Shown: one piece after another, positions 36,969-62,578 of the stretch
Layout: each line of letters opens with the position of its first letter
How positions within the stretch are numbered: position 1 is the stretch's first letter
Assembly: GCA_964199315.1 (NCBI GenBank)
Contig: OZ116706.1
Location: forward strand, 5,828,001-5,892,000
From: Orbicella franksi
Taxonomy: Eukaryota
Direction of reading: 5' to 3'
Length of the DNA stretch: 64,000 nt
Made by a program: the position numbers and the translations under genes
Notes under the pieces: model-generated
Seen by the model: only the letters and a program-made list of their open reading frames with translations
What the model was told of the DNA's origin: nothing
Database searches by the model: none

Positions 36969-37660
36969 AACATAAATCTCCTTGTATAAAGTGTATTTGT
37001 AGAGTCATTTTAGATGCTTTTTCAACTTTGAGAGTATTAAAGTAAAAGTGCTTTTATAGAAAATGTAAAGGTGCAAATACCACCAAGTAGTATGGCTATA
37101 AGTCCCAGATGAGGTTTTCAGTACAGAAGGAGATATGATCTGAACGGATTAGTTAACGCTAAATGTAGAGGGAAAGAAATTCCTGAATGCAGGTCCAGTG
37201 TCACAAAGAGGAGAAACTCTAGACTGCACGGACTCCGAGGATGACCTTCCTAAATTCCTCAGTTTAGCCATGTACATTCTATCTTCAAGTCGGCAGAATC
37301 TTGAGGGTATCTGACAGAAAAGGTTCGCTGTTGTTATATCATTCGTAAAATAGCCCTACTGAGACTGTTATTTTTTCGCTTTTAAAAGCATTTCTTTTGT
37401 AATCCTTTTATTGATTTTATTTTTTGTAGGGTTATTTTTGTTCCGTTTGTAATTTTTTTGTATTTCAATATGTTGGCATGTTATGATATCATTCGTAAAA
37501 TAGCTCTGCCGAGACTGTTAGTTTTTTCGTTTTTTAAAAAATTTCTTTTGTAATCCTTTTATTGATTTCTTTTATTTTTTATAGAGCTATTTTTGTTCAA
37601 TTTGTATTTTTTTTTAAGTGTAAAAGGAAGCCACTCTAAAACAAATATGTAAAAAAATGC
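36400..37660 (+). repeat. Last intron, death-domain exon and 3' flank of A2; duplicated at ~53138-54225
   Basis: Colinear similarity from attgataagtg through the DD exon to ...ctctaaaacaaatat. Confidence 0.9.
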
Positions 37661-38928: not shown

Positions 38929-41013
38929 CATGCCCTCAGCACGTTAACCCTCTAGGTTGCAAGTGATCAATTTCATATATCAATTATTCATTCCAGATTC
39001 TCAGTTAAAATGTTCATTTTTCCCTTGTTCTCTCAAATCCTATAATCCTTTATTTGCCTTTCTCCTGCCGGCATAAACATGACAAAAAAATCATCACTGC
39101 AAACCTTACCCTCACACCATTGTCAGATCGCATGAAACATCGAAGGCAAACGAGGAGAGACCTGTATGGATAACGCCCCTTCAGTCTGGTTGGCCTCGTT
39201 TTCATAAGCTTGTTTTTTTCAGTTCATATTTTACTATAGTCGTGTCCCTGTAATTTACCATCAGAAAGGCATACAATGAATTATTCGTTTTGATTTGTGT
39301 TACAGGTAAGTTCTGTTACTTAATTAAGTGTTTCTTCTGAATGACGAAGGGCAGTTTAAAATGGAAGTACGTCGTTTCGCAAGGTTGGAGGTTTCTCTCT
39401 ACATTCAGAAAGTAAAGGTGAAAGATTGCGTCTTTTTATGTGGTTTTGAAGTACGTCTGGTTTCCAGAGTATGTGATGCAAAGAGTGTTACTTTAAAAAA
39501 CAAGAAAGGGGGTAATCTAAGAGACCGAAAGTCTCCCAGACTAAAGTTGGTGAAAGAGAAAATGGCCCTTTCAAGTTAATTAGATTTGTACTAAGCTTTC
39601 AAGCCAAGTGGTTATGTAATGAAACACTGGATCGAACAAATATTCTGCAAGAAGTGGTGGATGGTGTAAAGAGATCATTGAATACTGATCCCCACAAAGC
39701 AAACTAAAGGTTACCAAAAGTAAGGATTCTGAGAGGCATAGATTTCCTCTCTTTTAGTCTCGTAGGGTAAAAGTCATCCATGTTCTTTTATTCGAGATGG
39801 AAAATTTCTACCATGAGATGGTTTTTTTCAAAGTCAAAGGTGTAATTTTTGTTCTTTACACAAGACTTAGTCAGGCATAGTAAAGCTGCTTTCAGTTTTA
39901 AACCGCATCTATTAAAATAAACGCCACGCAATGCATGTACTTGTAGAGACGATGACGTTTAACGTTGACGTTGGCTATCTTGGACATTGCAAAACAAACA
40001 AACGGATGCATAAGGTAAATAAAAGTAACTAAAATTGGTACAAAATGTCTGTAGCAGGAGCGAGACGTGTTAAAAAAATGGGTGCAAGGACAAGGGGAAT
40101 TGATTTTGCTGTTGCTGTTGTTCGTTTTAGCTTTGAGCCATACAATAAAATAAAATTCCTGCATGTAGGGCACCAACAAAAAATTTGACTTTCCTGACGG
40201 TTCTGATTATTATCAGCCATTTAGCGATGTTTGCTGCATTGCAGACCCATTCACCATTTTATCGTCATTCAACCAAAACTCACTTTTTGAGAGAAATTAC
40301 TAGTTTAGAATTTGATTGTCAGATTAAGATGAACGGTTATAAAAAGCTACTGAGTGGCTGCTCTTGTCTTTCATTATACGGCGCATTTCGACTTACTGTC
40401 TTCAAAAACGGCACTATTGATTTCTTTTACTTGTATTCTGTTTCTTAGATTTCTGCCTTATTGCGTTAGTGATTGAGCGTGTGCGATGTTTTAATACTCA
40501 TACGACACCTTCATGATGCCGTGCTTCAACAATTTTTTCCTTGTGCTTATATTGTTATTGCAATGCCTCTACTACCTTTATTCGCTGGAAGACAAGTTCA
40601 TTTAGTGTGTACTCGATCAAGGTCAACGATTCAGCCATACTACAGAGGATCGTGACATATGGAAAAATGTACAATTATTTGTTTGATTGTATACTTGTTC
40701 TTCTTCCCTGCTTGTCTGATACGTAACTGGCGCCTGTATACCAGTGGAACGAAGCATTCAAGTTGATAGGTTACGTGGGGTCTGGGTAATGGTTATGACG
40801 GAGGCGGGCGGCGGTAAGGGAATCATGGGACAGTAACAAGGTAGTTGTATGTCAGAAAAAGTCTGTCAACTTTTTTCGTGCTATTCGTTCCTTTATTCCC
40901 CGTCGTATGGCTGCGATTTCAAAATCTGCTGACTGTTTGATTGCGTTAAACGTTGTGCAACTTCTCTACCCACGCTCACAGAAAAGATGCCGTCATGATG
41001 ACGAGATTGTCTA

Positions 41014-41023
41014 GGGAATTCCC
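41014..41023. promoter_or_regulatory. NF-kB site upstream of B2
   Basis: GGGAATTCCC, about 383 bp before the ATG at 41397. Confidence 0.6.
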
Positions 41024-41396
41024 CCAGGACGTCAACCAAGAATTTCCATCGTCATCACTATTTAAACTGAGGTTCGTAATATTCTCACTGAGACAAGTAA
41101 AATCGACTTATTTGGTGAGTATAGTTCATTATCATAGTAAAGTCATGACTTATTCATCTCCATCAAACGGAAGGGTAAATTAAGTGTCAAATTAATAGTG
41201 ATTTTAAATCGCTTACATTTGTATAGGCGTCGCTTCGATTAGATTACGATTAGTAGTGTATACGATATTAATTGTTATTATCTGGTCGTGTTTTAAGCTG
41301 AAACGTCTGATTACCTTTGCAGTAGCCGTTTTACTTCGGAGCAGAATATTCAAAGTGAACTTACCAGAACAAATCGTGAGGAAGACTGAACCCCCG

Positions 41397-44088
41397 ATGT
41401 GTTGCTTCAGAATCGTAACGAGAACAGTTTTTATGGCAGCCCTGGTAAGTTTGCGTAGTTTAAGGACTTTTAATGTCATTTCGCCGAGCTTTTTCGGTCA
41501 TAGCTATTGACGAATGGTTGTTATTGCAGTATACGTATTATGTTTTATTAGGGTCGCATAACCTCATAAAGTTAACACGTTCCATTGAGCGATAAGATAT
41601 CTATTGTGTCATGCGAACAACACAATTGAAAGACAGCCTCGCTTATCGTGACAAGGCCACAGGTCCAGTATTTTGCTAATTCAACTCCAGCCACACTTGT
41701 AAGCATGCGTTCCACCAATTTCCTGTTCAGTTTAATTTGCCCAATTGCAACTGATCATTATAAAACCGCAGAAATGTGAATTGTTTTTTTTTTTTTTATA
41801 TCATTTCGTATTTTGTCTACCTGGGAAGAGTCAAGAAGAATTCGTTTGTTTATGATTTTGTGGGACGTCGGCCTTTGCCACTGATTTATTTTGTCTCATT
41901 TTCTTTATTGGTTGAAAAAATTACTTGATAGATAAATGAAAAAAACACACAAAAAAGCCATAGTATCGCGATCACGTTAACTTTTTGATTCAGAAACTTT
42001 TCATTGTTTCATAGCTCCAAGCTCAAACCAGCTGCTGCTGTGGATGCAAAGATGACGAAGTCACCTGGCGAAGCAATAATGGAACACAGAATGACACATG
42101 CTTGGCTTGTATCGACTGTCCAGATGGAATGGAACCCTCGATTCCTTGCGGAACGGTCGCCAAATATGGAACACATTTACACTGTGTGGCATGTAGAGAG
42201 GGAACCTTTTCCGATACGTACGGCAAAAGACAGTGCAAGCCGTGTTCCGTATGCTCAGTTGGGCGAACAGTCGCACGAAACTGCTCTGTCACCAAGAACA
42301 CGCAATGTGGCTCTTGTAGCCATGGGTATTACGAGAGTAAGATCGTTTTTGATTGTCTGCCGTGTTCTGTCTGTTGTTGGGACGAAAAAGATCAACTCGA
42401 GAGTCAATGCAAAGCCCAGGGTCTACCAAGTCATCGCCACTGCAAACCCAGGCACGAGCGTGGCTGCCAAGCGCCTCGGACAAGCGGGGTAAAAGTGACA
42501 TCTGGCGCGGCAACTGGGCGACCAAATCAAGGAGCTACGAAGAAAAACAGCAGCAACACCACCACGACAACGACGACAACAACAACAACAACAAAAACAA
42601 CAAAAACGACAACAGCAACCGAAGAAAAAGTAGCATCACTTTCACCCACAACAGTCACAACAGACGAGCGTTTCATTAGCAGTAAGACCAGAGATCAAAA
42701 CACGAGTTCCAGCACTCTCTCCACTTCTTCAACTGAGCTGCCAAAAAGAACTGCTTCAGCTACAGGCACTGTTGGCAAAAGCAATCTAGCTTTTAAAAAG
42801 AGCAAAGGTTCTTTGTCAGACAGTAGCGGCGCAAACAAGAATCGAGTCATTAAGGCTGTGAGTGTGAGCATCGCCATTTTAATAATGATTGTATTTGTCG
42901 CCAAGAGGAAGAAAATTGCGGCCTACTTCAAGTGGGCGAGGTGCCATCTCACTTGTGGGTGTAGATCTAGCGACGCTGAACTCGGGGGAGCCACCGAAAG
43001 CTCAGTGCTAGATGACATCAAAGGACAACCTGTGAGTGTCGTGCCTAAAGGAGGTGAGAAGAAATATATACCTTGCTTGTACTTCGCTATTTAATCTGAT
43101 CATCTAATGCACGGATGTATCAATACTTTTGAGCCATAGTCATGATAGTAGTCCTGTATATATATATCGGTAGCTGGGAAAACATGTTGATGCATGTTGC
43201 TAATAGGGGCAGGCCATGCCACGTAGCACCGTTGCTGCAGTACCTAGTATTTTCAGTTTTCAGTCCGAACAAGCAAGGGGGAGGATGCGATACGGACCTC
43301 TCGACGTTTTTCTTTATTAATTTCCTCTGTAAAGCTGAAACTTTCAACTGCGTCTCTTTTATACCTGTTTCTTCGCGTCATTTGATAATGCCACAGTAAC
43401 CACATTTTGACATGCTGGCTGATCTAACTTTCGTCTTTTTCGTAGAATTCTTTCTTTTTCCCCAGTTGTCTGGGCTGATAATATCGCGGAATCAGTAATT
43501 TTTGTCATATTATTATTTAACTACAGAGCGGAGAGGCTTCCTACCATCGCTACTTGATATCGGGAGCGGGAGTGGGAATTTGATTATACCAGTTACTCTA
43601 CCACGTTCCGTTTTTCGTAATGCACCTAGGGCCGGCATTAACCAATTTCCATATCGCAAACCGAAACATGTATTATGCATAGTTCAACGTGGAATATTTA
43701 CGAGCAAATGACGAATGTCATTGATGGTAAACAGTTCTTTAATATTTATTTTCTTTTTCCAGTTCTTATTCCCATGAAAGAGCTCAAGTTCCTCTCTCTC
43801 GACACCTATGACAGAGTGTGGAAACGATTGGACAAAAAGCCAGAAGGAGCAAAGAAGGGTGACTTCAAGCATGTGGCTGCAGAGTTCATGTATACACAGG
43901 AAGACGTTTGGGAACTAGAGAAGGAACTTAGAACTTCCGGATCAGGAAGTCCTTCAAGACAGCTATTGGACGGCCTCGAGACTAGGCGGCCTGAGCTAAC
44001 TGTATTAGAGATGGTTAAAGTGCTGCAAAAACCGAAAATTCAGAGGGACGATATCGTTAAATTGCTAAATGATTATATTTGTAGATAG
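41397..44088 (+). CDS. TNF receptor superfamily death receptor, subtype B, copy 2 (B2), ~470 aa
   Basis: Exons 41397-41444, 42015-43053 and 43763-44088. The structure is the same as B1, with a stalk 10 aa longer. Confidence 0.92.
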
Positions 44089-46531
44089 TCAGTCGCAAGA
44101 ATATGAAAGTTTTTGATACTCAGCCAATATGGTGAGTGAGAGAAGGCTTCAGGACAGTTGCTCACGTCTGGGAGGCCCTTTGCCGTGTCACTTCAACTGC
44201 TGTCACACTATTCTACAATGGGGAGTGGAAGTGATGAAAGTTAGGTGACAGCTGTCAACTTCTGTTTGCTGAAGAAAAGGTTTAAGTTTTAAAATCTCCT
44301 GAGAACAAATACTAACTGGCAGAGCGCGTGTTTTGACTGACTTAAATTAAAGCATTAAAGTACACAAGAATGGCAGAAACCCTAATATTCTGGGTTTGAT
44401 CGCATGAAGTCAGCGCTATTCTTACAATGGAAAGTTAAAAATAGAGAGAATTAAATTAATTTAAATAAGCTATAATGCACAGATTTTCTATGACAAAATG
44501 TTTTACTCCTTTTCTACTGTTGTCCTTGTTTAATTTATATATCGTGCGGTGTTTTCTCCTTAGTTTCTAGATTTAGATTCCTGTGTGTAGAGGTTTATTT
44601 ACTTATAATTCTAAATATTTTAACTCTTATTTCCAACAATGTTGTATCTTATTTACTTTATGTTGTATTGTGCTTGTAGCAATGTGTGGTTGTTCAATTA
44701 AATTAGAAAAAACAAGGAGAAAAACACTTGGCAATTTAATTTAAGCATTGTAAACTTTTACATTCACTGAATATAATACTGAACAATACAAGACAGATCA
44801 TAGTGTCTGGACTTTCCAGAACAATTAGTTGAACAAAGTTCACTAAACTTTTCGAAATATTTATATGTCCATATCTGGGTAAAATAGTGAGTACCGGCGA
44901 AGTTCTTGTTCATTTTTGACTGGTTCTTTACAACGCTTGCAAAAAAAGAGAACCTTACTAGATTAACAAATCTCAGAACAAAAAAATTGTTTGTCTTCAA
45001 TAACACGTAAATGTGCCTTGAACGCTTTGGTTTGAGACCTTCGGACTTTATGAGAGAAAAAGAAAAGTTGTGTTCGTGTTTGTCCTCCTTGTATTTGAAA
45101 TCGTACTTACTAAAGCTTGACTTGCAACAATTGAGCAGTAATGGTATGCAGCGCTTTGCGTCCCTGCTGGTCGACCTAGGGCTTAATATAACGCCAGGTT
45201 TTTTTTGTGACAATGCGTGTACAATAATGGACCAGCTCCCCCCCCCCCCCAGGGGGGTAGCCCTTAAATGGGTATGTGGCGCTGCGAAGGGTATGGTTTT
45301 CAGGCAGTTTAGTCTGGGATAGGGTATAGAAATTAGACAGTTTTGGTCCAGAATAAGGTATAATTTACCGGGAAAGTGGCCAGTGTATAAATAATTTAGT
45401 TCTTTATCGGGGGTTTTAGTAATAGAAATTGAAACTCAAACGTGACACTGTAAGCTAAGATAATGGTTTAGTTAGCATATGTTGGACCAGCATGACGATT
45501 AAGTTTCTGCAAGGAAAATGGTGCCTAGTCTAAAAACATCAGGGTGATCATGGTCTAGTATTGGGTAAGGGTTTCATTGCCCCAGCGGTACACGTCATAC
45601 CTCTACCAAAAGATTTACAGAGAATGTCCCCCTTACCGGGACCTTCATCGTGTCCAGGGTCTCCTTTCCTCCCGCCCCCTGGAGTAGAAGAGAGACCCTG
45701 GGAACGAGGTCGCCGAGATATCTTATAACGCACATACTTTTGATACCAGCGAAATACCTCTGGGAAGATCCTTTCTGTATGGAGCCTTGTTCCTGAGTCC
45801 TTCTAGTTCCCTTCCTAGCCTGGTCCTGTCAAATGAACGTGCTCGCTTGATTCGCTTTATATACTAATCTTTATAGCTTTTTACCCAAGAAATAACTGCC
45901 CTAAAAGGTCCTAAAACCACTGGTTTTCACTGTCAGTTTTAGACCACATTTAATAGGGGAGAAAATTTATGAAGACTGACAAACGTCTTTTGTTGTATGT
46001 TTTTGTTCCCTTTCCTGGCCTAGCCTGCGACACAAACATTCTTCATCACCGTTAAACTATATCGAGGACTTTGTGACACGAGCGTCTGACTGTACTGCGG
46101 GCTATTTTTGGCTTTGACCTCGCAAAAACATAATAGATGTTTCCTTTTGTCTAAGGAACTAACCAATAGGAACGGTTCACGTATAGTCTATTAGGGAAAA
46201 CAAAAGATTGCGCACGAGCATGGAGCCTCCAACATCAATCTTAACATTTTGCTTGCTACTTTGAAGTTTTCAGGGCTGCTTAAACCATTTTCTTCTATTG
46301 ACTACGTTCAAACCGACATGGCCGGTCTGCATGTCTGCATTGGATTTCTTTACAAAAAACAAGATAGACCAGCTATTACTACATTGTACATGCAACAGAG
46401 GGATATTTTTCGGAATAGCACATGGCAGTCCTCTACCAATTTTTTTTCTCATACCTTCACGCATTTTCCACAGAATTCTTGACGATCGTGACAAACCGGA
46501 TCTGCGTTAGCCGTGTGGCCTGGCCTCGGCT

Positions 46532-46881: not shown

Positions 46882-49800
46882 ATGGGACAACGAGTTCAAC
46901 ACTCAGCAAACTTCACTTCGACGAAGTCGCGCCCCAAAGCTGTCTCGGTGGTCACTGCCACGATGAAAGGCTGTTTGGTTTCAGTGAGCTTCGCTATGCT
47001 GGTGAGTACAGAAGTCACAGTCATTTACAGTATATCATTTCTAATGAAGATAGAGACAGTATTAAAAAATAGTTTCACTATTTGTTTTCGTTCTGAAACA
47101 TTGTGAGGAGTTAATTACAGTGCTTGCTTATTTATGCTGAGTCATTATTTTGAGGCGGGTGAACCTTCGTGTTCGCTTGCTTAAGTTTTGAAAACTGACA
47201 AACAGGTTTTTGGTTGTTCATGTTTTCATAATCTTTCCCTCTAGAGAGAAATATACTTTAATGTTGGATCTTTAGTCCACATCTGTCTTATAATATTTAA
47301 GTTTACGTTCTATGCGCGACACGTTCCGGAGCAACAAACGTTCGGCGATTAATTTACATTTTCATCTTTGGATGTCATATCTACGCTGGCTGGAACAACC
47401 AGTAGCTTTTTTTTTCTCGGTTACGTGCAAATTAGTTGGTTAAAATGGCATAATCTGTGAATTTTCGATTTACTATTCTGCACACGATGGTGACCCTTCG
47501 TTTTTCACTTTCGATTTTTTGGTTCAAAAAATGTGCATTACGTGTCATGAGAAACTGAGATTATCACTTACTGTATTGAACGTGGAAGATTCATCACATT
47601 ATACGTCTATGTACGGGCTAAATGGAAATGAAAGAGGTTAGATAGGTTCTTCGCTAAAGTCTGGCTGAACAAGACTTAAATGCATACACAAGATCACATG
47701 ACAGAAATAAGCTGTGTCTCGTGATATGAGACAAAACGTTAATTTTTGCTTCAATGTCTATTTTTTTCCCGCGTGATATGATTTTCTACTATTATTTATG
47801 AAGACAAGCGACCTTATTAGGTTTATAAAGTGATATCTGCGGCTGCTTGCCCGAAATTTTGGGCAAAAACAACGACGAATGCGTCGCGACACAGGGCTAA
47901 AATCGTATTATGACATCAGCCAAAAAAGTATGTCGATCGATGACCTAATTCGTCACATGCCCAGACACAAGGCGGATCTTGTCTGACTAGTCTGACCTAC
48001 TAAACAAACTTGTTTGTCTGACTAAGCATTATGAATTTACTGTCTTTTAATTTATCTCACTCTTGGCAGCAACGTATAGACTACGGGTAGTTTCTCTTTC
48101 GCTCAGCCCGTCCTGCGTGACGTGAAAGAAAACCGCGAGGAAAAAAAATGGCCGCGCGAAATCTTGGGGGCGAAATTTCGCGCGGCCATTTTTTTTCTCG
48201 CGGTTTTCTTTCGCGTCACGCCGGACGGACTGAGCGAAAGAGGCACTACTCGTAGTCTACGTTGCTGCGAAGAGAAACATTGCGTGACGGTTTCGGTTGC
48301 GTTATCATCTTGGATAATGAGATATGCCAGATATTTTCCGCCAAATTAAATACAACTTTTTTTATAACGTTTTTCTTATAAAGAATTTACCAAATTTGGA
48401 CTAAAACAACGACTTTGATCCAAACCAAGGCTTACCGAACTAGAACGAGGGCCCACTAAAAACCTGTGGAAAATTCAAAGCATCTTCACAACAAACCGAA
48501 TGACGTTGAGACGAAACTGGTTTAAAATTGTCTCTGAAAATGATCTAGTTACAAAAGTACTGTCAACGCTTTCTGACTAATGATCTTGAATGTGGCTTAG
48601 TAGTCTATATTACGCAAGCCCATGTACACAAGGTTACTCGATGGAATGGCGAACGATCCCTGGGAGAGGAGGGGGGAGTTTCTTCCATATATGGACTATA
48701 TGGGTACAGTAATAGCCCACGTATAAGAACCCGGATTTTAAGAACCTGTTAGGCTAAAATTTTCATTTTAAGCCTCCTCCACATAAGAACCTATTAAGGC
48801 TGGGTGGGGTTGCTGTAAAAGTGTATAGGTAGAAACTGCTGAGTTAAGATCGTCATCTATTCAAAAGTAACTTGACATAACTTTTTTTTTCTTTCAAGCT
48901 CATTGCTTGAACTTTTTATGAATTTGGTATCAACATCAGTTTCTTTGTTATGTTTTGTTAAGGACATATACTGTACCTGCACTGAACTACCTATAGGCAT
49001 TGCTCTATGGTACAAATAAATGATTTATGCTGTATTATGAGATGATATTTATGATATATATAGTATATTCAGATGAAATTCATATGAAAATATAAGAACC
49101 TATTTTAAGAACCTTGGTAGCCTAAATTTGCTTTAAGTACCATTTATATAACAACCTATTTAGGCTAAATTGAAAAATTCACGCTCTTATACGTGGGCTA
49201 TTACTGTATGTGCTGCGGGATAGAGCAGGGTGTTTGAAGTTCTGGATCCTTAAATAGGGTATCATTTTTGCCCCTGTTGGCATTTTTGTTCCCGGTGTGA
49301 TCCTTTGAAAGGGTACCTTAATTGTGTCGGCTAAAATTGCAGTGCATAAATGCCCAGCTAAACGAAAAGTAAATGAACTGTTAAAACTGAACTATTCGTA
49401 AACTTCCAATGTTACAGAAACGAAATAAAGTTGAACCGTCCACGCCATTCTTGGTTTTTGTTTTTCTCTTCAATAAATTATGTCTGTATGTGCCGCTCAG
49501 CGGGTTGTGATTTCATGCAGGTCTTCTGTCTCATATTCTAGACGTCTCTTAGAAATGGGCATAAAGTTTCGAACGCACGACAAACTTTGCTTTGTGTTCA
49601 GGTTTTTGCAAGTCCACGAAAAAAGAACTAACTTTCAAAAACGAGTTTATGAAGTAAGTTATTTTCTACTCTAAATCTGGCATATTTCTAGAATAGAGTA
49701 TAATTTTGAGACTTTTTGCAGTCTCCCTAAATAGGCCCTTGACACTTAAGCCATCACGTGACTTATTTTGTTTTATAATATTATGGGCTATAACTTAAAG

Positions 49801-52800
49801 AGTGCCAGAGATGGAAAAAGCACGAAATGTTATGACGGTTTGAATTTTCAAAAATTTAAGAAGATTCGTATGAAAAAAGTTGTTGGAGAGCAAGACCTTG
49901 TCCGCAACATAACCTCTAACTAAACTTTCCTAAAACTCCAACTGTTAAATAAGACTTAATCTTAAATACCAGAGACGTGGGCCTCAAACTTGGCCATTAT
50001 ACTATTTCGATATTTTCTTTCCATTTCTGGCATTTTTAAGTTATGGCCCATAATATAAAAATCTTTTTGCTCAAATTTTGTCACGTGATCCCGGCTGCAA
50101 AGTGTTTATCTAGGTTGTAAATTTGTAGACTTGGACCAGGTTGTTCAAAGCCCGATTAGATAGTCCAGGTGATCTTAGTTTTGTAACTTTTCGGTGAGGT
50201 TTTCTGTTTATATTAATTGTCCTTCAGTTTTGAGCTTGAGTTATCTCACACAATACAAATTAAAGGAAGTGAAAAACATTTAAACAAGAACAAATTATGC
50301 TTCGGTTAACTTTTAATCCTGGGTTAGCGTTAACCAGCAATCGAACAACCCAGCGCTGGGTGGCACACTGACACATGTACTCACACGTCGTACCCGGAAT
50401 CTCCACGCCGCCTAGTGCTTAGTCAGCAGTCACCTTCATAGCTGTTAGTCTGGTAACCAGTCTACTGTGAAGGTGACTATGGTTAATATGACACGTACTA
50501 CATATAATTTCTCTCTCCGATTCCAACTTTAGTTTGCTTAGTTGGTTGTCTTTGTTGGGAACATATATCTACCAACCTGGCGACTCTTTTTCTTTAACAG
50601 GTTTGTCATGTCGGAGCAAACTTCTTTCCCTGCAACCCAGAACAGATCCATTGGAATACTACGGTGGGAAAGAGACCGAAATGTTTTGACTGTCCTGATT
50701 GTCTCCCAGGGACAGAGCCTTCAGTCCCGTGTGGGACCTCAGTAAACTACTGGCCAGACATTCACTGTGTTTCGTGCAAACTTGGCAAAACGTACTCTGA
50801 CAAATATGACACATCGCAATGCAAGGCATGTACAATATGTACTAGAGGAAGAGCAGTTAAAAATAACTGCACCTTAACTACAAATACTAAATGTGACAGC
50901 AAATGTGGGCCCGGATTTTATACTGTTCGTTTGATATCTGGCTGTTTCCCTTGCACGCAATGTTGCGGCGATGGAAAGGATGAGTTTGCAGCGGAATGTG
51001 CGAATAACAAGAAGAAGTGTAAAGTGCGGCCTACGCCATGCATCCATGTTGATACAACGCCTTCGAAGCCAGCCAATCGTAATTACAGCTCTTCTAAGCC
51101 AACCAAGCGTAATTACAGCACTTCTAATACCTCAACAACAGTTCAGACAGCAGGTGACAGAACAACAATGACGGTAAATGAAGAAGAGAACTCGTTGTTC
51201 GGAGGAGTCAGCATCTCGATCACGCCAACTTCGGCTTTGGATAACGGAGTGCTAAAAGACGCGAGAGTCGAGTCTGGAAAGCAAGATGGAATAAGTATAG
51301 TTGTGATCCTCTTGATCATAGCTGCAGCATTATGTGTGGTTTTGTCCATCTCAGTGATCGTAAAAAGATTCATACCAGTAAGATATATGCTACGATCTTC
51401 CAGGGAGCAGGATTCAAATAATGAAGGCTGTAACATTTCCCAAGGAGGAACACCACCTCTTCCCCATTCATCGGCGCGGTCTAGTCAGGATTCTGCAACA
51501 CCTTTGCTTAATCGATCAGAGTCACCTCAACCGAATGGATCTGCAACACCTCAGCATATGGTATCTACTCCACTACACACCAATGAAGCTGTATCATCTC
51601 AGCGGAATGAATCTGAATCGCCCGAGCCCAATAAATCTACCACAGTTCATTCCAGTGATTCTTATTCACCTCAGGCAAGAGAATATGAACCACCCCAACC
51701 CAATATATCTAGATCTGTCTCGCCTCAGACTAGTGAATCTGTATCATCTCAACCCGATGGATCTGCATCAACTCACCCCAATCAATCAGCAGCAGCAGCC
51801 GCCCAGTCCAATCGACCTGCTCAAGAACAAGTCAAATCGAATCCAGGTGAGGTATTGTCGATAAAAAGCCAGCATGGCTATTAAAGATTATATAATAACC
51901 CAAGTTATTCTCGCATTTTGATTGGTTCTCGCCTATGATCTATTAGAGGACAGACGCACGATTGACGTCATCATTACAAAGTTTTTCCCTCTGTGTTTTA
52001 AAATGGCGGAAAGTTTTGAGAATTTAGATAATTTAGATACGTGACTGGGCAAAAGATAAGGTACAAAAAAGTCGGGCATTGAAAAGAAACGAGAAGCATA
52101 GTCTAGCAGGAAGGAGAAAGATAAGGCCGTTTCTTTTTTAGAAAATGACTCAGAAAAAATACTCGGCAGTCGAGCGAGACTAAACCAAACACAAAATTGG
52201 TTTTGGTAAGCCGCGAACCACGGCTTTATTTCGAATTTAACAAACCCAATAAATTATTAATTAATTAACCCAATAATACTTGACTTTTCAGCATGTTCTT
52301 TAAAGTGCCTATGAAGTAAAAAATAATTGCTGCTTATTTGAAAGGCCCTTCAAAGTTAAGAAGAATGACGTTTTCCTTTTGCGAATATCTTTTTTTCGTT
52401 TACATATTTACATTTTTGTATTATGCAAATGAGGAAAGTGATGATGTCATAGGTGGTTCCACTAAAACAGCACAACACTCAATCGAGTATAACTCTAGAA
52501 ATATTAAGGCACTGTTCTTTAAACTTGGCATCAGAAATGTACATCACAAACGAAACATAATGAAACCCGTCGTGCCGTTGCCATGACAACAGTTATGCCG
52601 CTGGTTCTGTTTCAATTAAGACTAAAATTCCCGGATTTTATCTTAAACGAGGATCATCCACTCCCGCCAATGTAATGGGAAGTGTTAAGACAATATAAGA
52701 ACCATGCGTGTTCCGAGCAAGACCCTCTGTCCCATTTTTAAAGGTTGCAAATAGGGAAATTTGTTTTTTCACAGAAAGAGACTGAAGCCAAGAGTGTTGC

Positions 52801-53699
52801 CATGGCAACAACATAGTAGGTGTCATTCTGTTTCTTTTGTGATGTACATTGCTGGTGCCAAGTTTGAAGAACACTGCTTTAACATTTATAGAGTTATTCA
52901 AAAAGTGATCATCACCTTCATTATCGCCCTTACCTTCACCCTGAACGGTCACCAACAAACACCGTCACCACCAACCTGACCATCATCAACAATAACACTA
53001 TTAAATTACCGTTACTTCCATCTCAGGTGGTACAACCTTTGAAGCATTTTCCAGTGTTTGAACGGATGTGTAAAGACCTTAACAGCAAAAGGCCTGGTGA
53101 CTGGCCTTTTGCTGTGCGTATTTTAATACTGAAAGGCATTGATAAGTGCATTAAAGGCATTTGAACGATTGGTTTCGCATGAGGATTTCATCCAAGTTTA
53201 GTTATCTGGTGTGCAGAAATACAATCTATAAGTATTTTAAAGCGAGATTAACTGCTGTGAAACTTACCTTAAGACATTAAGCACAGTAAGCTGCACTGTG
53301 TAATTTGTAGACGCCATTTTTTCACGGAATCTAATGAGATTTGTTTGGGCAAGATAGTATCACTCGTCAAACGCGTTTGTTTGTTTGTTCTTGATAGATT
53401 CTAAACCATTAAGTAGCTTACTGGAGAAGGAATCTGACCTGCAAAAGATCTGTGAGTGTTTGGATACAAACATGGCAGGGGTTGGTCACTACCGAGCAGT
53501 TGCTCTGTACTATGGATCTAGTCATTGCCAGATAGTCTCGGTCTTCGAAAAGCACTGGGGAGGACCATCCAGAGCCTTAATAGAATCCCTTAAAGCTAAG
53601 AAACCAGAACTTACAGTGGCAGAGTTTGCCTCTGTGGTGAGAAAAGAGGCTAACAGGAACGACGTCGTTAAACTGCTAGAAGAATACAACTTAAAATAG
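46882..53699 (+). CDS. Chimeric TNF receptor superfamily gene C1: subtype-C ectodomain/TM/linker joined to a subtype-A death domain
   Basis: Exons 46882 (or 46963)-47001 (MKGCLVSVSFAML|gtgagt), 50601-51846 (CRDs, stalk, TM IVVILLIIAAALCVVLSISVIV, S/P-rich linker, CCA G|gtgag) and 53398-53699 (gatag|AT TCT AAA CCA, A2-like DD). The phase-1 junction keeps the frame. The final splice is inferred. Confidence 0.75.
48066..48268. mobile_element. ~200-bp palindromic MITE in C1 intron 1, absent from the C2 paralog
   Basis: tagactacgggtag...gaaagaaaaccgcgag...tggccgcgcgaaat / atttcgcgcggcca...ctcgcggttttctttc...ctactcgtagtcta forms one long hairpin. Confidence 0.85.
48705..49208. mobile_element. Young MITE with perfect TIRs and TA TSD, nested in an older repeat
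   Basis: tacagtaatagcccacgtataaga ... tcttatacgtgggctattactgta, a 24/24 match including the TA. It interrupts ...ggactatatgggTA|tgtgctgcggg.... Confidence 0.9.
50131..50358. mobile_element. MITE in C1 intron 1 (family of 33577-33817)
   Basis: ggttgttcaaagcccgatta ... ttaaccagcaatcgaacaacc imperfect inverted ends; absent from the C2 intron. Confidence 0.7.
52300..52905. mobile_element. Truncated repeat insertion with internal inverted segments in C1 intron 2
   Basis: Starts TTAAagtgcctatgaag. About 52506-52590 is an imperfect reverse complement of about 52793-52880. Not present in the C2 intron. Confidence 0.5.
53027..53104 (+). pseudogene. Broken remnant of the native subtype-C death-domain exon of C1
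   Basis: Homologous to 62238-~62330 with an intact ccatctcag acceptor. A 14-nt deletion (agctcgaggaaaag) causes a frameshift and a TGA at 53059-53061. Homology stops at ...aggcctggtgactgg. Confidence 0.85.
53398..53699 (+). CDS. Intact subtype-A death-domain exon captured downstream of C1
   Basis: DSKPLSSLLEKESDLQKICECLD...RNDVVKLLEEYNLK has 12 differences in 100 aa from the A2 DD exon (36667-36968). The acceptor and stop are conserved. Confidence 0.8.
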
Positions 53700-55182
53700 A
53701 ACATAAATCTCCTTGTATAAAATGAATTTGTAGAGTCATTTTAGATGCTTTTTCATCTTTAACAGTATTAAAATACTTTTATAGGAAATGTAAAGGTGCA
53801 AATAAGATCACGTAGTATGTCGATAAGTCCAAGATGAGGTCTTCAGTACAGGAGGAGATAGTCAGTGGTGAGAAGTGATCTGAACGGATTAGTTGACGCT
53901 AAACGTTAGAGGGAAAGGAATTTCTGAATGCAGGTCTAGTGTCACAAACTGGAAAAACTCTAGACTGCACTGACTCCGAGTATGGCCTTCCTAAATTCCT
54001 CAGTTTAGCCATACACATTCTATCTTCAAGTCGGCAGGATCTTGAGGGTATCTGACAGAAACGGTTCGCTGTTATTATATCATTCGTTATTTTTCGTTAT
54101 TAAAAACATTCCTTTTGTAATCCTTTTATTGATTTATTTTATTTTTTATAGAGCTATTTTTGTTCAATTTGTATTTAAGTGTGAATCGAAAGGAAGTCTC
54201 TCTAAAACAAATATTTAAAAAAAAAAACTGAAAGACAGACAACATAAACAGAAAACTGGACCGAAAAGTTTTATTGTAAGATGTATGTACTGTGTTGTGA
54301 GGAACAAGTATTGTATTGTAAAAGTTACTGTAATTAAGTAATGTAAAGGTAAGATAAGCAGTGTCGATAAAAAATCGAATAAGATCAAAATTTAAAAAAA
54401 TGCAAAAGATAAACACAAAAAGTGAAGAATAACAACAACAACAACAAAAACAATTCAAAACAAGAAACAGTAAACGAAACTGGTCAATGTCGGTGAAATA
54501 GGATGTTAATTATAATTATCAGAGATGTCTCACATTGTAAATGTTTTTAACACCATCGAAACCGTCCTATGGATAAAAATAACGTTTGCCTTTTGTGGGT
54601 TAATTTTCACAACTTTTAACCCTCTGTGAAAAGATTCGAATTGTTATTTTTTTCTGTCCAATTTTGGATATTTTCCAGTTCGCAGGCGTTATTTGTTATT
54701 TGTATCGTCACCCAATGCTTTTCCCTAAGCCACGGCTACCATGGAGACCAGCTTTTGGTTTGAGAAAGCTCTTTATGTTAAAATTTGGCCTTTTAAAGAT
54801 AGCTAACTTGACTGATATTTTACTTTAGGACCGTTAATCAGTTAGTAGGCTCGGGCTGGGCCCTTGTGACTGACACACCATGTAACTCTGAAACATAGAA
54901 ATCGAAAAAAAAAGAAAACGATTCTGAATCAGTAATTGCCTATCTTGCTATAATTGTTCTTCCGGTAAAATAAATCGCTTTATGGCAATAAAAGATCGAC
55001 GGTAAACAAAGTGTCTACGGCTGATAATTTTGGGGAATAAATAGAGATAAAAACGCATAGGAAACTGTCCAATTACAATTCAGTTGTAATCTATTAATTT
55101 GTCATGTTCCTTATTCAAACCGTCATTATTATTTTTTAAAAAAAGGAAAAGTGACGAAATTTCTTGTTATTAATTTAATAAC

Positions 55183-55671
55183 AATACACTTGAAAAAAAT
55201 TACTCGATTCTGATTGGCTAAGAGCGTGCAGTTTAAGTGTAACACCAGTGCAAAAAGTGTAACACCAGCGGAAATTACGAGATTACCAGACCCCTTCAGA
55301 ACGGTAAACGAATATCAGCCAAACAGCCAAATATTTTCGAACACCCGCAGCTCAACAATCACCCGAACCCTTGCGAAGATTACCAAAGATTACCCGTAAA
55401 TTACTGAAAATTTTCCAACATTATCGGACGTTTTCCGAATAGTTTCAATTATTAGTGTACAGCAAAGACCCTAATTAGTCTATTTTCGAGCGTGTTATTA
55501 ACAAGTAATCATATGACTATTCTCGTGCAATAACAGAGCACCTGTGAATTTTTCGAATACTACAATCTGCACTCACCCTATGGGTATGTGCAATTTTGTT
55601 AGCCCTTGAAAGATTTACTCGTGCTTATTCATTCCAAATTGCGTCGAAATCATGTGATTATCTGATACATA
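55183..55671. repeat. Interspersed repeat fragment (probable non-autonomous DNA element)
   Basis: Contains ttctgattggctaagagc, duplicated gtgtaacaccag and gtgcttattcattccaaattgc...gaaatcatgtgatta. I recall this as an abundant anthozoan repeat; it cannot be verified here. Confidence 0.35.
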
Positions 55672-58269: not shown

Positions 58270-61200
58270 ATGGGACAAAGAGTTCAACACTCAGCAAGCT
58301 GCATGTTGAAGAAATCTTGCTCCAAGGCTATCTTCACTGCCACGATGAAAAGCTGTTTGACTTTAATGATCTTCGTTATTTTGGTGAGTACAGAAGTTAC
58401 AGTCATTTATATTATTTCCAGTGATGATAATAACAGTATTACAAAGTCGCTTCACCCTTTTCTTTTCATTCTGGGATTAATATGAAATTGTGAAGATTTA
58501 GTTGATTGCTTGCTTAATATGCACAGTCATCATGTTGGGGAGGCTTACGGCCTTCCTGTTCGCTTGCCACTTAAATTTTAAAACTTGATAAAGAGGTCTT
58601 CAGTTTGGCTGTTCACTCGCAAAGAAATTCTCATCTCCCTTCGATCAGGAGAGAGATATTCTTAACTGAATGCTGAATTTTCGTAGTCTACATCTCTCAG
58701 GTAGATCAACCATACAGGTCACTTTACCAACTAACGAACGCTCGGCAGTATTTTACATCCAAAGTTAAAAAGTGCAAAGACACCCACGCATTGCACTTTT
58801 TAACTTTGGATGTCATATCTACGTTGACTGGACCAGACAGTACTCTATCTCCCTCGGTTGTATGCAAATTAGCTGGTTAAAATGGCATAATCTGTCGATT
58901 TTCGATTTGGGCTGTTCTGCATATTAATGGCGACCTTTCGTTGTTCACTTTCGATTCCAGTTTCCTCTTCAAAAAATATGGTTTGATATGTAATGAGAAA
59001 CTAACCTTGTGATTCATACTTGCTAGATTCATTGTGGAAGACTGATCAAAGTATACGTCTACGTGCAGGCTGCATAGAAGTGTAAAGAAGTAAAATAAGT
59101 TCATTGCTTCAATACGTGTAAGCCTTTAACGGCAACACAAGATCACATGACAGATATAAGCTGTACTCGTAATGTGAGACAAAACACTATTATTTGCTTC
59201 AATGTCTATTTTTTTCGCGAGTGGAATGTTCTACTATTATTTAGGAAGACAAGCGATCTTTTTAGGTTTATTAAGTGATATCTGCAGCTGTTTATCCGAA
59301 ATCTTGGGCAGAAACAATGACGATTCAGAGGTAAAATCGCATCAGGACATCAGCGAAAAATTACATCGATGACCTAACTCGGCGACAATGCCACATGCTG
59401 ATCACGAGACTCAGGAATCCAAGGTGATCTAGTCTGCTATTGGCAGAGAAAGCTCTTTGACAAGGTCGTCAAACTTGTTTCGTCGACTACGAATTACGAA
59501 TTTATTGTTTTTTTTTTCTCACACTTCACAGAAACGAAACATTACGTGACTGGGTCTCGGTTGCATCACCATCCTGAATAATGCGATATATAAACGCATG
59601 TAGATTTTGCGTAATCCTAAAACGAATACTCCGAGCTTGGACTAAAACTAAGACCCACTGAACTAGAACAACGACCCAGTAAAATCGAAAGCGATTGATT
59701 GTCTCCCAAAATGATCTTTAGTTACAAAAGTACTGTCAACGCTTTGTGACCAATGACCCCTCATATGCTCCCTCCCTTTCAACAGATTCAGCAGTCTGTA
59801 TTGCGCAAGATTACTCGATGGATTTCATTCGCCCTCTCGCATAGTTCTTTTCTATGCCCACTGGTGATGACAGAGATGTTGTTCTCATTCGATCGATAAG
59901 TTCGAGTTTGAGAGACCTATTGTAGAGTCCATTCGGTTATGGAAATGAAGGTACCAACATACAGAGAACTTCACATTGTAGCTATTCAGTCACCAAACTC
60001 TCAAGATAACTATGCTGATACATGTGCCACTCAACGGTGTCGAGATTTCAGGACTTCTAACTCATATTCGAGACGTCTCGTTGAAAGGGGGTTTAATATT
60101 TCGAACACAAGAAAACTTTGCTTTTTGTGCATGTGTTTTTGGCAAGTTCATTAGCAAGGAATTAACTTTTTAAAAACGTGCTTCTGATATCTACAAAATT
60201 TCTATTTAAAAACTGGCGTATTTCAAGTGCAGGTATAGTTTTGAATACAAAGTCTCCGTGAAATGGGGTGTAAAGCACCTAACACCCATCCCCGCCTTCC
60301 AGGGCTTAGTCAGCAGTCTCCTTCGAGTTTCCTACGCAGCCGTGAATCTAGTAACCAGTTCACTGTGAAAATACAACCTTAATGCATGGATAATAAGACA
60401 GGCACAACTTATAGATAATTTCCCTCAGTCTTCAGTTCTAACTGTAGTTTGCTCAACTTATTGTGTTTGTTGGAATCATACATATCTACTCACCTGGCGA
60501 CCAAAATGACACATTTTCTTTACTGACAGGTTTGTCGTGTTGGAGCAAACTTTCCCTGCAGACCTGAACAGATCCATTGGAATACTACAGTGGGAAAGAG
60601 ACCGAAATGTTTTGACTGTCCTGACTGTCTCCCAGGGACAGAGCCTTCAGTCCCGTGTGGGACCTCAGTAAACTACTGGCCAGACATTCACTGTGTTTCG
60701 TGCAAACTTGGCAAAACGTACTCTGACAAATATGACACATCGCAATGCAAGGCATGTACAATATGTTCTGATGGAAAAGCAGTTAAAAATAACTGCAACT
60801 TAACTACAAATACTAAATGTGACAGCAAATGTGGGCCCGGATTTTATACCGTTCTTTTGATATCTGGCTGTTTCCCTTGCACGCAATGTTGCGGCGATGG
60901 AAAGGATGAGTTTGCAGCGGAATGTGCGAATAACAAGAAGAAGTGTAAAGTGCGGCCTACGCCATGCACCCGTGTTCAGACAACGCCTTCGAAGCCAACC
61001 ACGCGTAATTACAGCACTTCTAAAACCTCACCAACAGTTCAGACAGCACGTGACAGAACAACAACGACGGTAAATGAAGAAGAGAAATCGGTGTCCGGAG
61101 AGTCCAGGATCTCGATCACGCCAACTTCGACTTTGGATAACGAAGTGCTAAGAAGTGAAAAAGTTGAGTCTGGAAAAGAAGATGGAATAAACATAGTTGT

Positions 61201-62578
61201 GATCCTGTTGATCATAGCTGCAGCATTATGTGTGGTTTTGTTCATCACGATGATCGTAAAAAGAGTCATGCCAGTAGGAGATATGTTACGACCATCCAGG
61301 GAGCAGGATTCAAATAATGAAGGCTGTAACATTTCCCAAGGAGGAACACCACCTCTACCCCATTCGTCGGCACGGTCTAGTCAGGATTCTGAAACACCTT
61401 TGCTTAATCGATCAGAGTCACCTCAACCAAACGGATCTACATTACCTCAGCATATGGTATCTACTCCACTACACACCAATGAAGCTGTATTATCTCAGCC
61501 GAATGAATCTGAATCGCCCAAACCCAATAGATCTGCCTCGCCTCATTCCAGGGATTCTTTATCACCTCAAGCAAGAGAATATGAACCACCCCAACCCAAT
61601 ATATCCAGATCTGTCTCGCCCCAGACTAGTGAATCTGTATCATCTCAACCCGATAGATCTGCATCAACTCACCCCAATCAATTGGCAGCAGCAGCGGCCC
61701 AGTCCAATCGATCTGCTCAAGAACAAGGCAAATCAAATCCAGGTAAGTAATTGTCGATAAAAAGCCAGCGTGGCTATCAAAGATTCATACTGAAGTACGA
61801 TCAGGCTCATAGCTTGCATTAAACAATAAAGTTGATTTACCTCTGGTGACAAAGGCAAAAAAGTGAAAACATAGTTTGGAGGTTTGATGATTGAAAATTA
61901 ATAGTGGGGTGAAAGAAAGAGAAAAGCTGCCCCTGAAGTTTTCGTTGAATCATTAATTTCAATTTAAAAAAAAAACAATATAATTTTCCACCTCTCTCCG
62001 ATTGAGGCGTTCACTTCAAATTATCTGGTCGCCACATGTATCACTGCTACAACCATCACCATGCACTTCCAAACCCACGAACACCAACTGATCCGCGGGC
62101 ACAAAAACCAGATCATCATTTTCACATCGCCCTTACCCTCACCCTCAGCCGCCAACGCAACTCCGTCACCAGCAACATGAGTAACATGAACATCATCAAC
62201 AATAACATTAATAAATTACCACTACTTCCATTTTTAGGTGATGTTACCCTTGAAGAGCTCGAGGAAAAGCACTTTCCAGTGTTTGAACGGATGTGTAAAG
62301 ACCTTAACAGCAAAAGGCCTGGTGAATGGTGGGACTTCGAGCGCTTAGCTTCCTGTTACGATAAGATTTCGCTCACAGATCGCAACTCCTTGAAAAACGA
62401 GTTTCAGAACGGTGGCGGAATTCCCTCTGACGTCTTAATGAGTCATATAAAGACTAAATACCCAGATCATACCGTTCGTCATCTTGTTAGGAATCTGCAA
62501 AGAATCGGAAGGGATGACATAGCACAAAGATTAATTCCATACACTGTGAGAAAACCTTCGTCCACTCAAGGGTACTAA
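58270..62578 (+). CDS. TNF receptor superfamily death receptor, subtype C, copy 2 (C2), ~530-555 aa
   Basis: Exons 58270 (or 58345)-58383 (MKSCLTLMIFVIL|gtgagt), 60530-61742 (CRDs, stalk, TM, S/P-rich linker, CCA G|gtaagt) and 62238-62578 (tttttag|GT GAT GTT; death domain ...GRDDIAQRLIPY). The frame is continuous. Confidence 0.92.
58755..58813. repeat. Perfect 23-bp inverted repeat with 13-nt spacer in C2 intron 1
   Basis: acatccaaagttaaaaagtgcaa / ttgcactttttaactttggatgt. Confidence 0.9.

Follow-up and report, generated by a model that had tools for sequence, protein, structure and literature searches.

Capture of a paralogue's death-domain exon by a coral TNF-receptor gene in a tandem cluster

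Introduction

A coral tandem cluster of TNF-receptor genes, arranged in the order A1-B1-A2-B2-C1-C2 within a 64-kb window (the whole stretch of DNA analysed here), raises the question of whether one receptor can exchange its signalling module for that of a paralogue, and what such an exchange would do to its output. Domain rearrangements have been described among the innate-immune genes of amphioxus (PMC2575513), a domain-shuffling origin has been proposed for the IL-17 pathway (PMC11087794), and IGFLR1 has been described as a member of the TNFR family (PMC3099712). An earlier note, made from the letters of the window alone, proposed that C1 follows its neighbour C2 into a broken death-domain (DD) exon, continues as a copy of the end of A2, and would therefore sense a C-type ligand and signal by an A-type pathway. 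We find in C1 a clear example of exon capture in nature; the proposed change in signalling is weighed below.

Results

Organisation of C1

C1 is a three-exon gene of the TNF-receptor superfamily. Its predicted protein of ~555 aa would carry an A-type death domain behind a C-type signal peptide, cysteine-rich domains, transmembrane (TM) segment and linker. The features of C1, and those of C2 and A2 with which it is compared, are as follows.

46882 to 47001, plus strand: C1 exon 1 (ATG at 46882, inner ATG at 46963; phase 0; found by an ORF-plus-donor scan)
from 47002, plus strand: donor of C1 exon 1, GTGAGT
50601 to 51846, plus strand: C1 exon 2 (TNFR cysteine-rich domains, stalk, putative transmembrane helix, S/P-rich cytoplasmic linker)
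51846/51847, plus strand: end of C1 exon 2, in phase 1, with donor GT at 51847
51890 to 52906, no strand assigned: insertion in intron 2, absent from C2 and from a second coral species
52907 to 53026, plus strand: relic of the former C-type last intron (its 3' end), with acceptor AG at 53025-26; matches C2 62111 to 62237
53027 to 53104, plus strand: remnant of the C-type DD exon, with a 14-nt deletion, the resulting frameshift and TGA at 53059-61 (from the alignment with C2)
53105 to 53397, plus strand: last intron of A2 type, captured almost whole together with its acceptor (...cttgatAG)
53398 to 53699, plus strand: captured A-type DD exon, the last coding exon of C1 (phase 1, 100 codons, TAG at 53697-99)
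53700 to 54223, plus strand: captured A2 3' UTR and flank, 90.5% then 80% identical to A2 36969 to 37657
54585 to 54801, plus strand: diverged relic of the C-type 3' flank, 70% identical to C2 62853 to 63056
36355 to 37657, plus strand: A2 donor-type segment (last intron 36355 to 36666, DD exon 36667 to 36968, 3' flank)
58270 to 62578, plus strand: C2, the unchanged C-type reference paralogue (exons 58270 to 58383 and 60530 to 61742, DD exon 62238 to 62578)

Exon 1 encodes a predicted signal peptide (...MKGCLVSVSFAML) and is homologous to exon 1 of C2 (79%), with further homologues in L009, L004 and L005 and a similar N-terminus in the Oculina model P0034. The splice between exons 1 and 2 of C1 was not directly seen in cDNA; the equivalent C2 splice is present in cDNA L010, which is spliced at exactly the C2 exon joints. 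Exon 2 is 86% identical to that of C2, and its reading frame is open in the window and in the cDNA contigs L001 and L011. It matches the Pfam family TNFR_c6 (PF00020) in two stretches (E=3e-9, 37.6 bits with a cut-off of 29.4), its cysteine pattern is conserved with C2 and their relatives, and the hydrophobic stretch ISIVVILLIIAAALCVVLSISVIV is a candidate TM helix. The predicted extracellular TNFR-type cysteine-rich domains place C1 in the TNF-receptor superfamily. The insertion in intron 2 contains a ~600-bp element (52299-52899) with 103-nt inverted arms, a 90% identical copy of which lies inside the A2 intron of L006; RNA depth over this element is very high, and the reads continue into unlike sequence, as for a repeat.

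The breakpoint and the captured segment

Self-BLAST of the window aligned 50402-51889 with C2 60289-61785 (86.3%) and 52907-53104 with C2 62111-62329 (75.8%), and then 53138-54176 with A2 36400-37454 (84.7%) and 54090-54223 with A2 37523-37657 (87.4%). The colinearity with C2 that the earlier note had described thus holds through exon 2 and again over the final 120 nt of the intron and the initial 78 nt of the DD exon, and this remnant exon does carry the reported frameshifting deletion, running into its stop when read in phase 1. A switch to a copy of A2 follows as claimed, but at 53104/53105 and not at about 53138. Over 53105-53137, identity is 85% with L003, an orthologous chimera, and 67% with L006, an A2 orthologue, indicating that the window's own A2 has diverged there. 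On this alignment C1 is a chimeric gene with two parents and a defined breakpoint, C2-like to 53104 and A2-like from 53105, and the exon phylogenies conflict as expected, exon 2 being placed among C-type genes and the DD exon among A2-type genes.

On the A2 side the breakpoint lies ~10-15 nt inside the last intron, and the segment reaches from there across the DD exon into the 3' flank. It spans at least 1.1 kb in the window and at least 1.8 kb in the second species, where A2 homology in L003 and L009 extends to A2 position 38202. What C1 lost by replacement is everything in the C-type DD exon after nt 78 (window numbering), together with the proximal 3' UTR; because a relic of the C-type 3' flank survives downstream, the A2 piece took the place of ~0.5 kb of C1. 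In L004 and L005 this flank element has the same relative position, ~0.35-0.45 kb past the DD exon. A fusion by crossover was also considered and is ruled out by the relic at 54585-54801.

The captured exon is open and retains its own acceptor, and 12 of its 100 residues are not those of A2, as had been stated; seven of these differences are derived in A2. The exon is 92.1% identical to its A2 counterpart, the intron 84.5% (A2 36400-36666) and the initial 300 nt of the 3' flank 90.5%. The earlier note had also seen the intron as more diverged than the exon, with an estimate of ~80%.

The hybrid transcript

The proposed splice from 51846 to 53398 is present in the JGI metatranscriptome contigs L001 and L011, which come from two samples and have an uninterrupted frame up to the TAG stop. 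Four raw poly(A) reads from X23 show the same GT..AG joint, as do contigs from runs X1 and X2, and the predicted phase-1 join, CCA G/AT TCT AAA, occurs in the cDNA exactly as written. The DD exon is not a separate transcript, since it is joined to C1 exon 2 in cDNA, and the mature transcript unites the parts of C1 in frame. L001 and L011 also cover the captured 3' UTR and flank. Junction depth is low, at four raw reads.

A single, old capture

The same breakpoint is found in L003 and L009, both of the second coral species. In a maximum-likelihood tree the captured segments of the window and of L003 (winC1cap and L003cap) form a clade with support 100/99, and a grouping of winC1cap with winA2 is rejected (p-AU 8e-5). 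The shared breakpoint and the clade of captured segments indicate one old capture. Neutral identity is lower between C1 and C2 (70-76%) than between the captured segment and A2 (84.5%). Together these comparisons point to a one-time capture that postdates the C1/C2 duplication and predates the separation from the second species, in which the C-type exon stub has since been wholly deleted.

Ectodomains of the A and C types are ~34% identical. The cysteine-rich domains of C1 and C2 have a dS of 0.059, compared with 0.18 for the orthologue comparison, and contain blocks of 100% identity. On these sequence comparisons gene conversion keeps the two sets of domains alike, and the low dN/dS of the C1 cysteine-rich domains may reflect import from C2 by this route.

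A-type and C-type death domains

The captured exon is predicted to fold as a death domain. Its AlphaFold2 model has a pLDDT of 97.0, a pTM of 0.88 and seven helical elements, in keeping with the six-helix bundle of about 80-100 residues that characterises this superfamily, and almost all of the leading Foldseek matches are to death domains (Fas/FADD, UNC5H2, p75NTR, RAIDD, RIPK1, IRAK4). The best structural match is IGFLR1 (TM 0.84, 24-27% identity), followed by p75NTR, FADD, UNC5 and MyD88. The gathering score of Pfam Death (PF00531) was not reached by the captured exon or A2 (no match), by A1 (E=0.089) or by the C2 DD (19 bits, cut-off 22.6), and a profile search against PDB sequences gave the UNC5H2 DD at E=0.43.

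If A-type and C-type DDs recruit one and the same adaptor, the swap would be functionally silent, and C1 would amount to another C-type receptor whose tail has been replaced. Comparison of the two DD profiles shows homology (hhalign probability 97.6%, E=4e-12) and two common motifs, G-PS..L and R(N/D)D(V/I), and IGFLR1 is the best match of both models, ahead of p75NTR, IRAK and MyD88; this homology and common best match make different adaptors for the two types plausible rather than established. However, the two types share only 22% identity, about the distance between vertebrate receptor death domains that use different adaptors, and each is conserved as a separate class across corals. We regard a silent swap as conceivable but doubtful.

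Selection on C1

We also considered that C1 might be an expressed but decaying chimera, with a dispensable protein drifting towards a pseudogene as already in the second species, and find this unlikely. The captured exon brought a good acceptor with it, which would explain transcription and splicing, and the 3' part of intron 1 is kept in both C1 cDNA contigs (L001 and L011). Recent dN/dS is 0.87 for C1 (7 synonymous and 20 non-synonymous changes) versus 0.15 for C2 (17 and 9, against L010; Fisher p=0.006 for the contrast), from which we infer relaxed recent selection on C1; over the long term dN/dS is 0.37-0.43. Within the species complex the captured DD exon shows only non-synonymous differences (1-3, with 0 synonymous). 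Between the copies of the two species its dN/dS is 0.43, with 0.32-0.71 for true A2 orthologues; the captured-exon ratio by itself is not significant (p=0.067). In the second species both chimeric copies have independent frameshifts in exon 2 (1 nt at L003:3244, 2 nt at L009:8518), and the L003 copy has lost a conserved Cys and the conserved Ser57.

The pattern of indels speaks against decay of C1 in the window's own lineage. In the window none of the three coding exons is disrupted, and open frames for exons 2 and 3 recur in L001 and L011 and in the genomic ORFs P0086 and P0087. The coding exons differ by five indels in ~1640 nt, compared with 27 in ~1750 nt of non-coding DNA. Over a dS of ~0.15, non-coding DNA of equal length has accumulated around 20 indels whose size is not divisible by three, whereas a single coding indel shifts the frame and this belongs to the second species; the captured DD exon has no indels against L009. 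Since the capture, the window's lineage has kept its coding exons free of frameshifts. Moreover, the captured exon retains every invariant position of the A-type DD alignment. The chimeric copies of the second species stem from a duplication of the C1-C2 unit (97.5% identity) and carry a single lesion each, so that any loss there is recent and postdates this duplication.

Splice choice and integrity of the junction

It is very improbable that the main product uses the old acceptor at 53027, reads 11 out-of-frame codons and ends as a DD-less decoy, with the A-type exon as 3' UTR. The acceptor AG and its pyrimidine tract (53010-53026) are intact, but no C1-specific reads were found at 53025-26 and no join of 51846 to 53027 with C1 letters, the four reads nearby carrying the letters of C2's undeleted sequence. 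All assembled C1 cDNAs use 53398, with the low depth leaving room for a minor isoform, and the second species is without the stub.

The 53.1-kb junction, which the earlier note had flagged as a possible mis-assembly, is present in many independent data sets as well as in the second species. An X2 contig (53071-53425) spans the breakpoint, and at least 20 DNA-type runs, labelled as five species, contain 0.74-1.00 of the words sampled from a 201-nt stretch at the breakpoint, which argues against mis-assembly. An assembly or haplotype artefact, or a DD exon that belongs to another transcript, can be dismissed with near certainty: independent RNA and DNA data sets cross the breakpoint, the identical junction occurs at two places in another species' assembly and cDNAs link C1 exon 2 to the captured exon, while the one X1 contig that links an A-type penultimate exon to a similar DD exon is best read as A-type mRNA placed on the similar exon.

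Discussion

The structural part of the original proposal stands: C1 is a genuine transcribed chimera, in which an exon for a C-type ectodomain, predicted TM segment and linker is spliced to an A2-derived DD exon. We think it probable that C1 arose by a one-time capture of an A2 segment which replaced its own DD, yielding an in-frame spliced hybrid whose output would differ from that of C2. Under this model the A2-type segment, which replaced ~0.5 kb of C1, would have been copied by non-homologous ectopic repair or templated insertion within the cluster; the old exon stub is out of frame, and the mRNA joins 51846 in frame to the captured exon at 53398. The resulting receptor would bind the same ligand as C2 and present a different DD surface. 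Its output might differ through a different adaptor, or C1 might act as an altered, possibly modulating partner in mixed complexes. The claim that C1 is rewired to the A-type pathway nevertheless needs tempering, given the homology of the A and C death domains, the recent C1 dN/dS of 0.87 and the frameshifts in the second species.

Like exon-shuffled chimeras in immune-receptor arrays, C1 has a signalling module that moved between paralogues at a phase-1-compatible intron boundary, and by its sequence it would represent a new input/output combination. What sets it apart is that a single 64-kb window still shows both parents, the precise breakpoint, the defunct remnant of the replaced exon and the spliced mRNA, and that the swap was between two death domains of the same fold rather than between different domain types. 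IGFLR1 (TMEM149) and p75NTR/NRADD-type receptors, the best structural matches of the captured A-type and of the C-type DDs, are type I membrane proteins in which TNFR-like cysteine-rich domains are combined with a C-terminal DD, the architecture predicted for C1; the coral DD sequences are too dissimilar for the Pfam Death cut-off, and the likeness is one of predicted structure.

The human decoy receptors TRAIL-R3 and TRAIL-R4 are TNF receptors without death domains that arose by tandem duplication. C1 is likewise a tandem death-receptor duplicate with a disabled original DD exon but, unlike these decoys, it gained and uses a foreign one. A further parallel is offered by vertebrate paired receptors (KIR, Ly49, SIRP and similar), which have near-identical ectodomains and different signalling tails. 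C1 and C2 likewise appear, from their sequences, to have ectodomains that are kept alike and homogenised, and very different cytoplasmic domains, the DD tails being 22% identical. In C1 and C2, however, the tails are two death domains and not an ITIM opposed to adaptor-binding TM residues, and the family is TNFR and not Ig or lectin. We tentatively suggest that C1 and C2 could be a cnidarian counterpart of paired receptors, with ectodomains matched by conversion and a death domain swapped by capture. If so, one ligand would trigger two outputs, or C1 would modulate C2 in mixed trimers.

A hybrid gene in an array of TNF-receptor-like genes

The window, 64 kb of eukaryotic DNA, holds an array of six TNF-receptor-like genes on the same strand (A1, B1, A2, B2, C1 and C2; 34–45% GC). 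Among named proteins, the nearest belong to stony corals, namely Oculina patagonica (54%), Stylophora and Acropora; the nearest unnamed ones come from coral metagenome and metatranscriptome assemblies, and the DNA is therefore scleractinian. Self-comparison showed that B1 and B2 are a 6-kb duplicate (20605-26543 vs 40424-46430, 80.5% identity), that A1 and A2 are alike in exons only, and that C1 and C2 resemble each other upstream, in exon 2 and over parts of the last intron. Because B1 and B2 have diverged far less than A1 and A2, the array did not arise by duplication of a single A-B unit. B1 and B2 each carry TNFR cysteine-rich domains and a C-type-like death domain (DD; 23907-24224), and the A and C ectodomains are ~34% identical. 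By homology, C1 would comprise three exons with about 555 codons.

Predicted exons of C1 (forward strand)
46882-47001, exon 1, MGQRVQHS...MKGCLVSVSFAML, from an ATG-to-GTGAGT scan
50601-51846, exon 2, by homology
53398-53699, exon 3, by homology

Exon 1 has homologues in C2 (58270-58383) and at the N-terminus of a gene model from Oculina; in a C2 cDNA contig (L010) the 58270-58383 exon is spliced exactly onto 60530. Immediately 5' of 50601 there are stops or no ATG in C1, C2 and four related loci, including L003 (second coral species) and L004 and L005 (C-type genes of two other assemblies), so this stretch is intron; the splice in L010 likewise argues against its use as the N-terminus, as in ORFs P0001 and P0017. 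A conserved block at 49551-49774 was also considered as exon 1 and is intronic in L010. Both C1 cDNA contigs keep the end of intron 1, their libraries being taken as total-RNA, and poly(A) reads hardly cover the 120 nt that precede 50601. At 50581, shortly before the acceptor of exon 2, the window is missing 9 nt (GACAAAAAT) that occur in a contig from run X2, in cDNA contig L001 and, with one base changed, in C2; this is an indel polymorphism in intron 1. The last intron of C1 contains a ~600-bp element (52299-52899) with inverted arms of 103 nt (52489-52591 and 52795-52897), which resembles an abundant MITE-like repeat: it reaches an RNA contig depth in the thousands, reads over it run on into unlike sequence, and the A2 intron of the second species has a copy (L006:1685-2286) with 90% identity.

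The breakpoint and the captured block

An earlier note had read C1 as a C-type receptor rewired to an A-type DD, and every element that it described was found in the alignments, with two corrections. C1 is colinear with C2 over 50402-51889 (C2 60289-61785, 86.3%) and again over 52907-53104 (C2 62111-62329, 75.8%), the latter ending in a 78-nt stub of the C-type DD exon. In the alignment the stub has a 14-nt deletion relative to C2 and, read in phase 1, reaches a TGA at 53059-61; its former acceptor is kept (AG at 53025-26). The sequence downstream is, as claimed, a copy of A2 36400-37657 (intron 84.5% identical, exon 92.1%, first 300 nt of the 3' flank 90.5%). In the captured exon, 53398-53699, the frame is open and 12 of 100 residues are unlike those of A2. 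The position of the switch had to be moved, from 53138 to 53104/53105. The 33 nt between 53104 and 53138 match the orthologous chimera of the second species at 85% and that species' A2 at 67%, and the window's own A2 is the copy that changed across them. On the A2 side, the edge of the copied block lies ~10-15 nt into the last intron (36355-36666).

A relic of C-type 3' flank (70% identical) remains at 54585-54801, downstream of the captured block, and the same element is found 0.35-0.45 kb beyond the DD exon in the C-type genes of two other assemblies. Thus, where the earlier note allowed a deletion/fusion or an ectopic insertion, a crossover fusion does not hold and the A2 block instead replaced ~0.5 kb of C1. 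A tandem duplication in the A2 3' flank (37329-37459 and 37479-37614) is a single unit in the captured copy, so it either arose in A2 after the capture or one unit was lost from C1.

The hybrid exists in DNA and is transcribed

The concern that the 53.1-kb junction might be an assembly artefact is refuted by independent data. A contig from run X2 (53071-53425) spans the breakpoint, the junction is present twice in the second species' assembly, and between 0.74 and 1.00 of the sampled words of a 201-nt stretch across it (53030-53230) occur in 20 or more DNA-type runs, which come from several studies and bear five species labels. Mis-assembly is ruled out by these RNA contigs, DNA-run words and second-species copies.

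The predicted splice from 51846 to 53398 was found in RNA. Searching proteins with exon 2 led to P0007 (JGI), in which ...AQEQVKSNP runs straight into DSKPLSSLLEKESDLQKICECLDT..., with residues specific to the C1 captured exon. Its contig, L001, matches window 50360-51846 at 97.2% and continues at 53396-54867, and L011/P0088, from a different JGI sample, makes the identical jump. Among public reads mapped over 49300-55200, the GT..AG joint is carried by four raw poly(A) reads of run X23 (three start points, with a shorter side of 67 nt) and by contigs from X1 and X2. The only reads near the former acceptor have 25 letters of the undeleted C2 sequence and are thus C2 mRNA placed on C1; no C1 transcript using the 53027 acceptor was seen in the reads mapped over this interval.

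At 53396, an X1 contig also links a penultimate exon of A type, which differs from A2 36325-36354 by 4 mismatches in 30 nt, to a DD exon with at least 95% similarity to the captured one; the captured exon may have a closer A-type paralogue than the window's A2. A third C-type gene outside the window, 88% identical to C1, is represented by L002 (JGI cDNA) and L008 (ENA genomic). The L002 DD exon is 99.3% identical to the captured exon (99.5% over exon and start of the 3' UTR). Its exon 2-DD join (L002/P0024) was sought in DNA and not confirmed, contig L008 stopping short of the DD. L002 is either a second chimeric gene in the species group or a chimeric metatranscriptome assembly, the latter being possible because its exon 2 is nearly identical to C1 over the last ~120 nt. 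In another C-type paralogue (L005:2873-4330) only ~6 nt separate exon 2 from a C-type DD and the last intron is missing, which suggests intron loss or a retrocopy. The location of P0070 was sought and not found.

Origin and age of the capture

An ENA contig of the second coral species, ctg56800, is syntenic with the window, carrying A2 (L006), then B2-C1-C2 (L009), plus a further C1'-C2' (L003). Both of its C1 copies have the A-type block at the same breakpoint as the window, without the exon stub and without the repeat insertion. The two chimeric copies (L003:2166-4292 and L009:8106-10228) lie ~50 kb apart and are 97.5% identical; the C1-C2 unit has evidently been duplicated in this species. 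Across intron and exon, 14 informative sites group the window's captured segment with that of L003, and one groups it with the window's A2. The maximum-likelihood tree likewise unites the two captured segments (100/99) and rejects the grouping with A2 (p-AU 8e-5). Sequence comparison thus indicates one capture before the two coral species split. The capture was later than the C1/C2 duplication, since non-coding identity between C1 and C2 (70-76%) is below that between A2 and the captured segment (84.5%).

The absence of homology at the edges and the inclusion of most of an intron point to an event at the DNA level, which would have been non-homologous ectopic repair or templated insertion. Among the alternatives, the tree and the informative sites rule out, for intron and exon, that A2 and the captured exon underwent recent gene conversion; in the 3' flank, where the alignment is poor, the signal is mixed. 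A simple unequal crossover or deletion fusion is rejected for the window by the C-type flank relic beyond the block and by neutral divergence that is older between C1 and C2 than between A2 and the captured segment, and a single tandem duplication creating both C1/C2 and the junction fits neither observation. A retroposed RNA fragment of A2, with its end at the A-run 54219-29, is dismissed as the source because the intron is nearly entire and A2 homology in L003 and L009 is ~0.5 kb longer, extending to A2 position 38202.

Selection on the hybrid and gene conversion with C2

Between the two species' chimeras the captured exon has a dN/dS of 0.43 (9 synonymous and 15 non-synonymous changes, p=0.067), within the range of true A2 orthologues (0.32-0.71). 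With outgroup A-type sequences, ~7 of its 12 differences from A2 arose in A2 and ~4 in C1. Between C1 and the syntenic L009 copy there are 5 indels in ~1640 nt of coding sequence, one of them frameshifting and L009's own, against 27 in ~1750 nt of non-coding sequence; the DD exon has none. Between the window and close relatives, C1 has 7 synonymous and 20 non-synonymous changes (dN/dS 0.87) whereas C2 has 17 and 9 (dN/dS 0.15; p=0.006 for the contrast). Each second-species chimera has its own frameshift in exon 2 (1 nt at L003:3244, 2 nt at L009:8518) and L003 also lacks a conserved Cys and Ser57; the captured DD exons are open in both. Our reading is that the hybrid was maintained through most of its history, that in the species group of the window it is intact and expressed, with selection now relaxed or changed, and that it is probably being lost in the second species' lineage, after the unit duplication.

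The cysteine-rich domains of C1 (50601-51035) and C2 (60530-60960) have a dS of 0.059 and blocks of 100% identity, against a dS of 0.18 in the C1 orthologue comparison, which indicates that gene conversion keeps the two ligand-binding modules alike. The remainder of exon 2 has a dS of 0.10-0.13, and the conversion appears to be ongoing and confined to the ligand-binding part. Vertebrate paired receptors similarly have ligand-binding modules that are kept alike and tails that differ.

The captured death domain

The captured exon scored below the Pfam Death threshold. AlphaFold, given an alignment of 26 A-type sequences, modelled it as a six-helix bundle (pLDDT 97). Almost all of its highest-ranking PDB matches are death domains (Fas/FADD, UNC5H2, p75NTR, RAIDD, RIPK1 and IRAK4), and among Swiss-Prot models the C-terminal domain of IGFLR1 comes first (TM 0.84, 24-27% identity), ahead of p75NTR, MyD88, FADD and NRADD. 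The C-type DD is also modelled as a death domain (pLDDT 86), again with IGFLR1 on top, and profile comparison finds the A and C death domains homologous (22% identity, probability 97.6%).

Discussion

C1 is a real chimeric gene: it is old and structurally sound, and its splicing is as predicted. That C1 rewires signalling is a reasonable hypothesis, weakened by the kinship of the A and C death domains and by the signs of relaxed constraint.

TNF-receptor and death-domain repertoires are greatly expanded in corals and, to our knowledge, almost nothing is known of how new receptor-to-pathway links originate in these animals. That exons are captured within expanded arrays of immune genes is known (PMC2575513, PMC11087794); our literature searches found no account of the C1 capture event. 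If the two death domains are equivalent or C1 is dispensable, the locus would be a textbook exon capture with little physiological weight. The C1 locus keeps each step of the process: both parents, the breakpoint, the disabled stub, the hybrid mRNA, an orthologue in another species and an unchanged sister gene, C2, with nearly the same ligand-binding domain. Its value lies mainly in being an unusually complete natural experiment, in which C1, C2 and A2 differ by defined modules, on how much of the signalling output of an early-branching animal is set by the death domain by itself.
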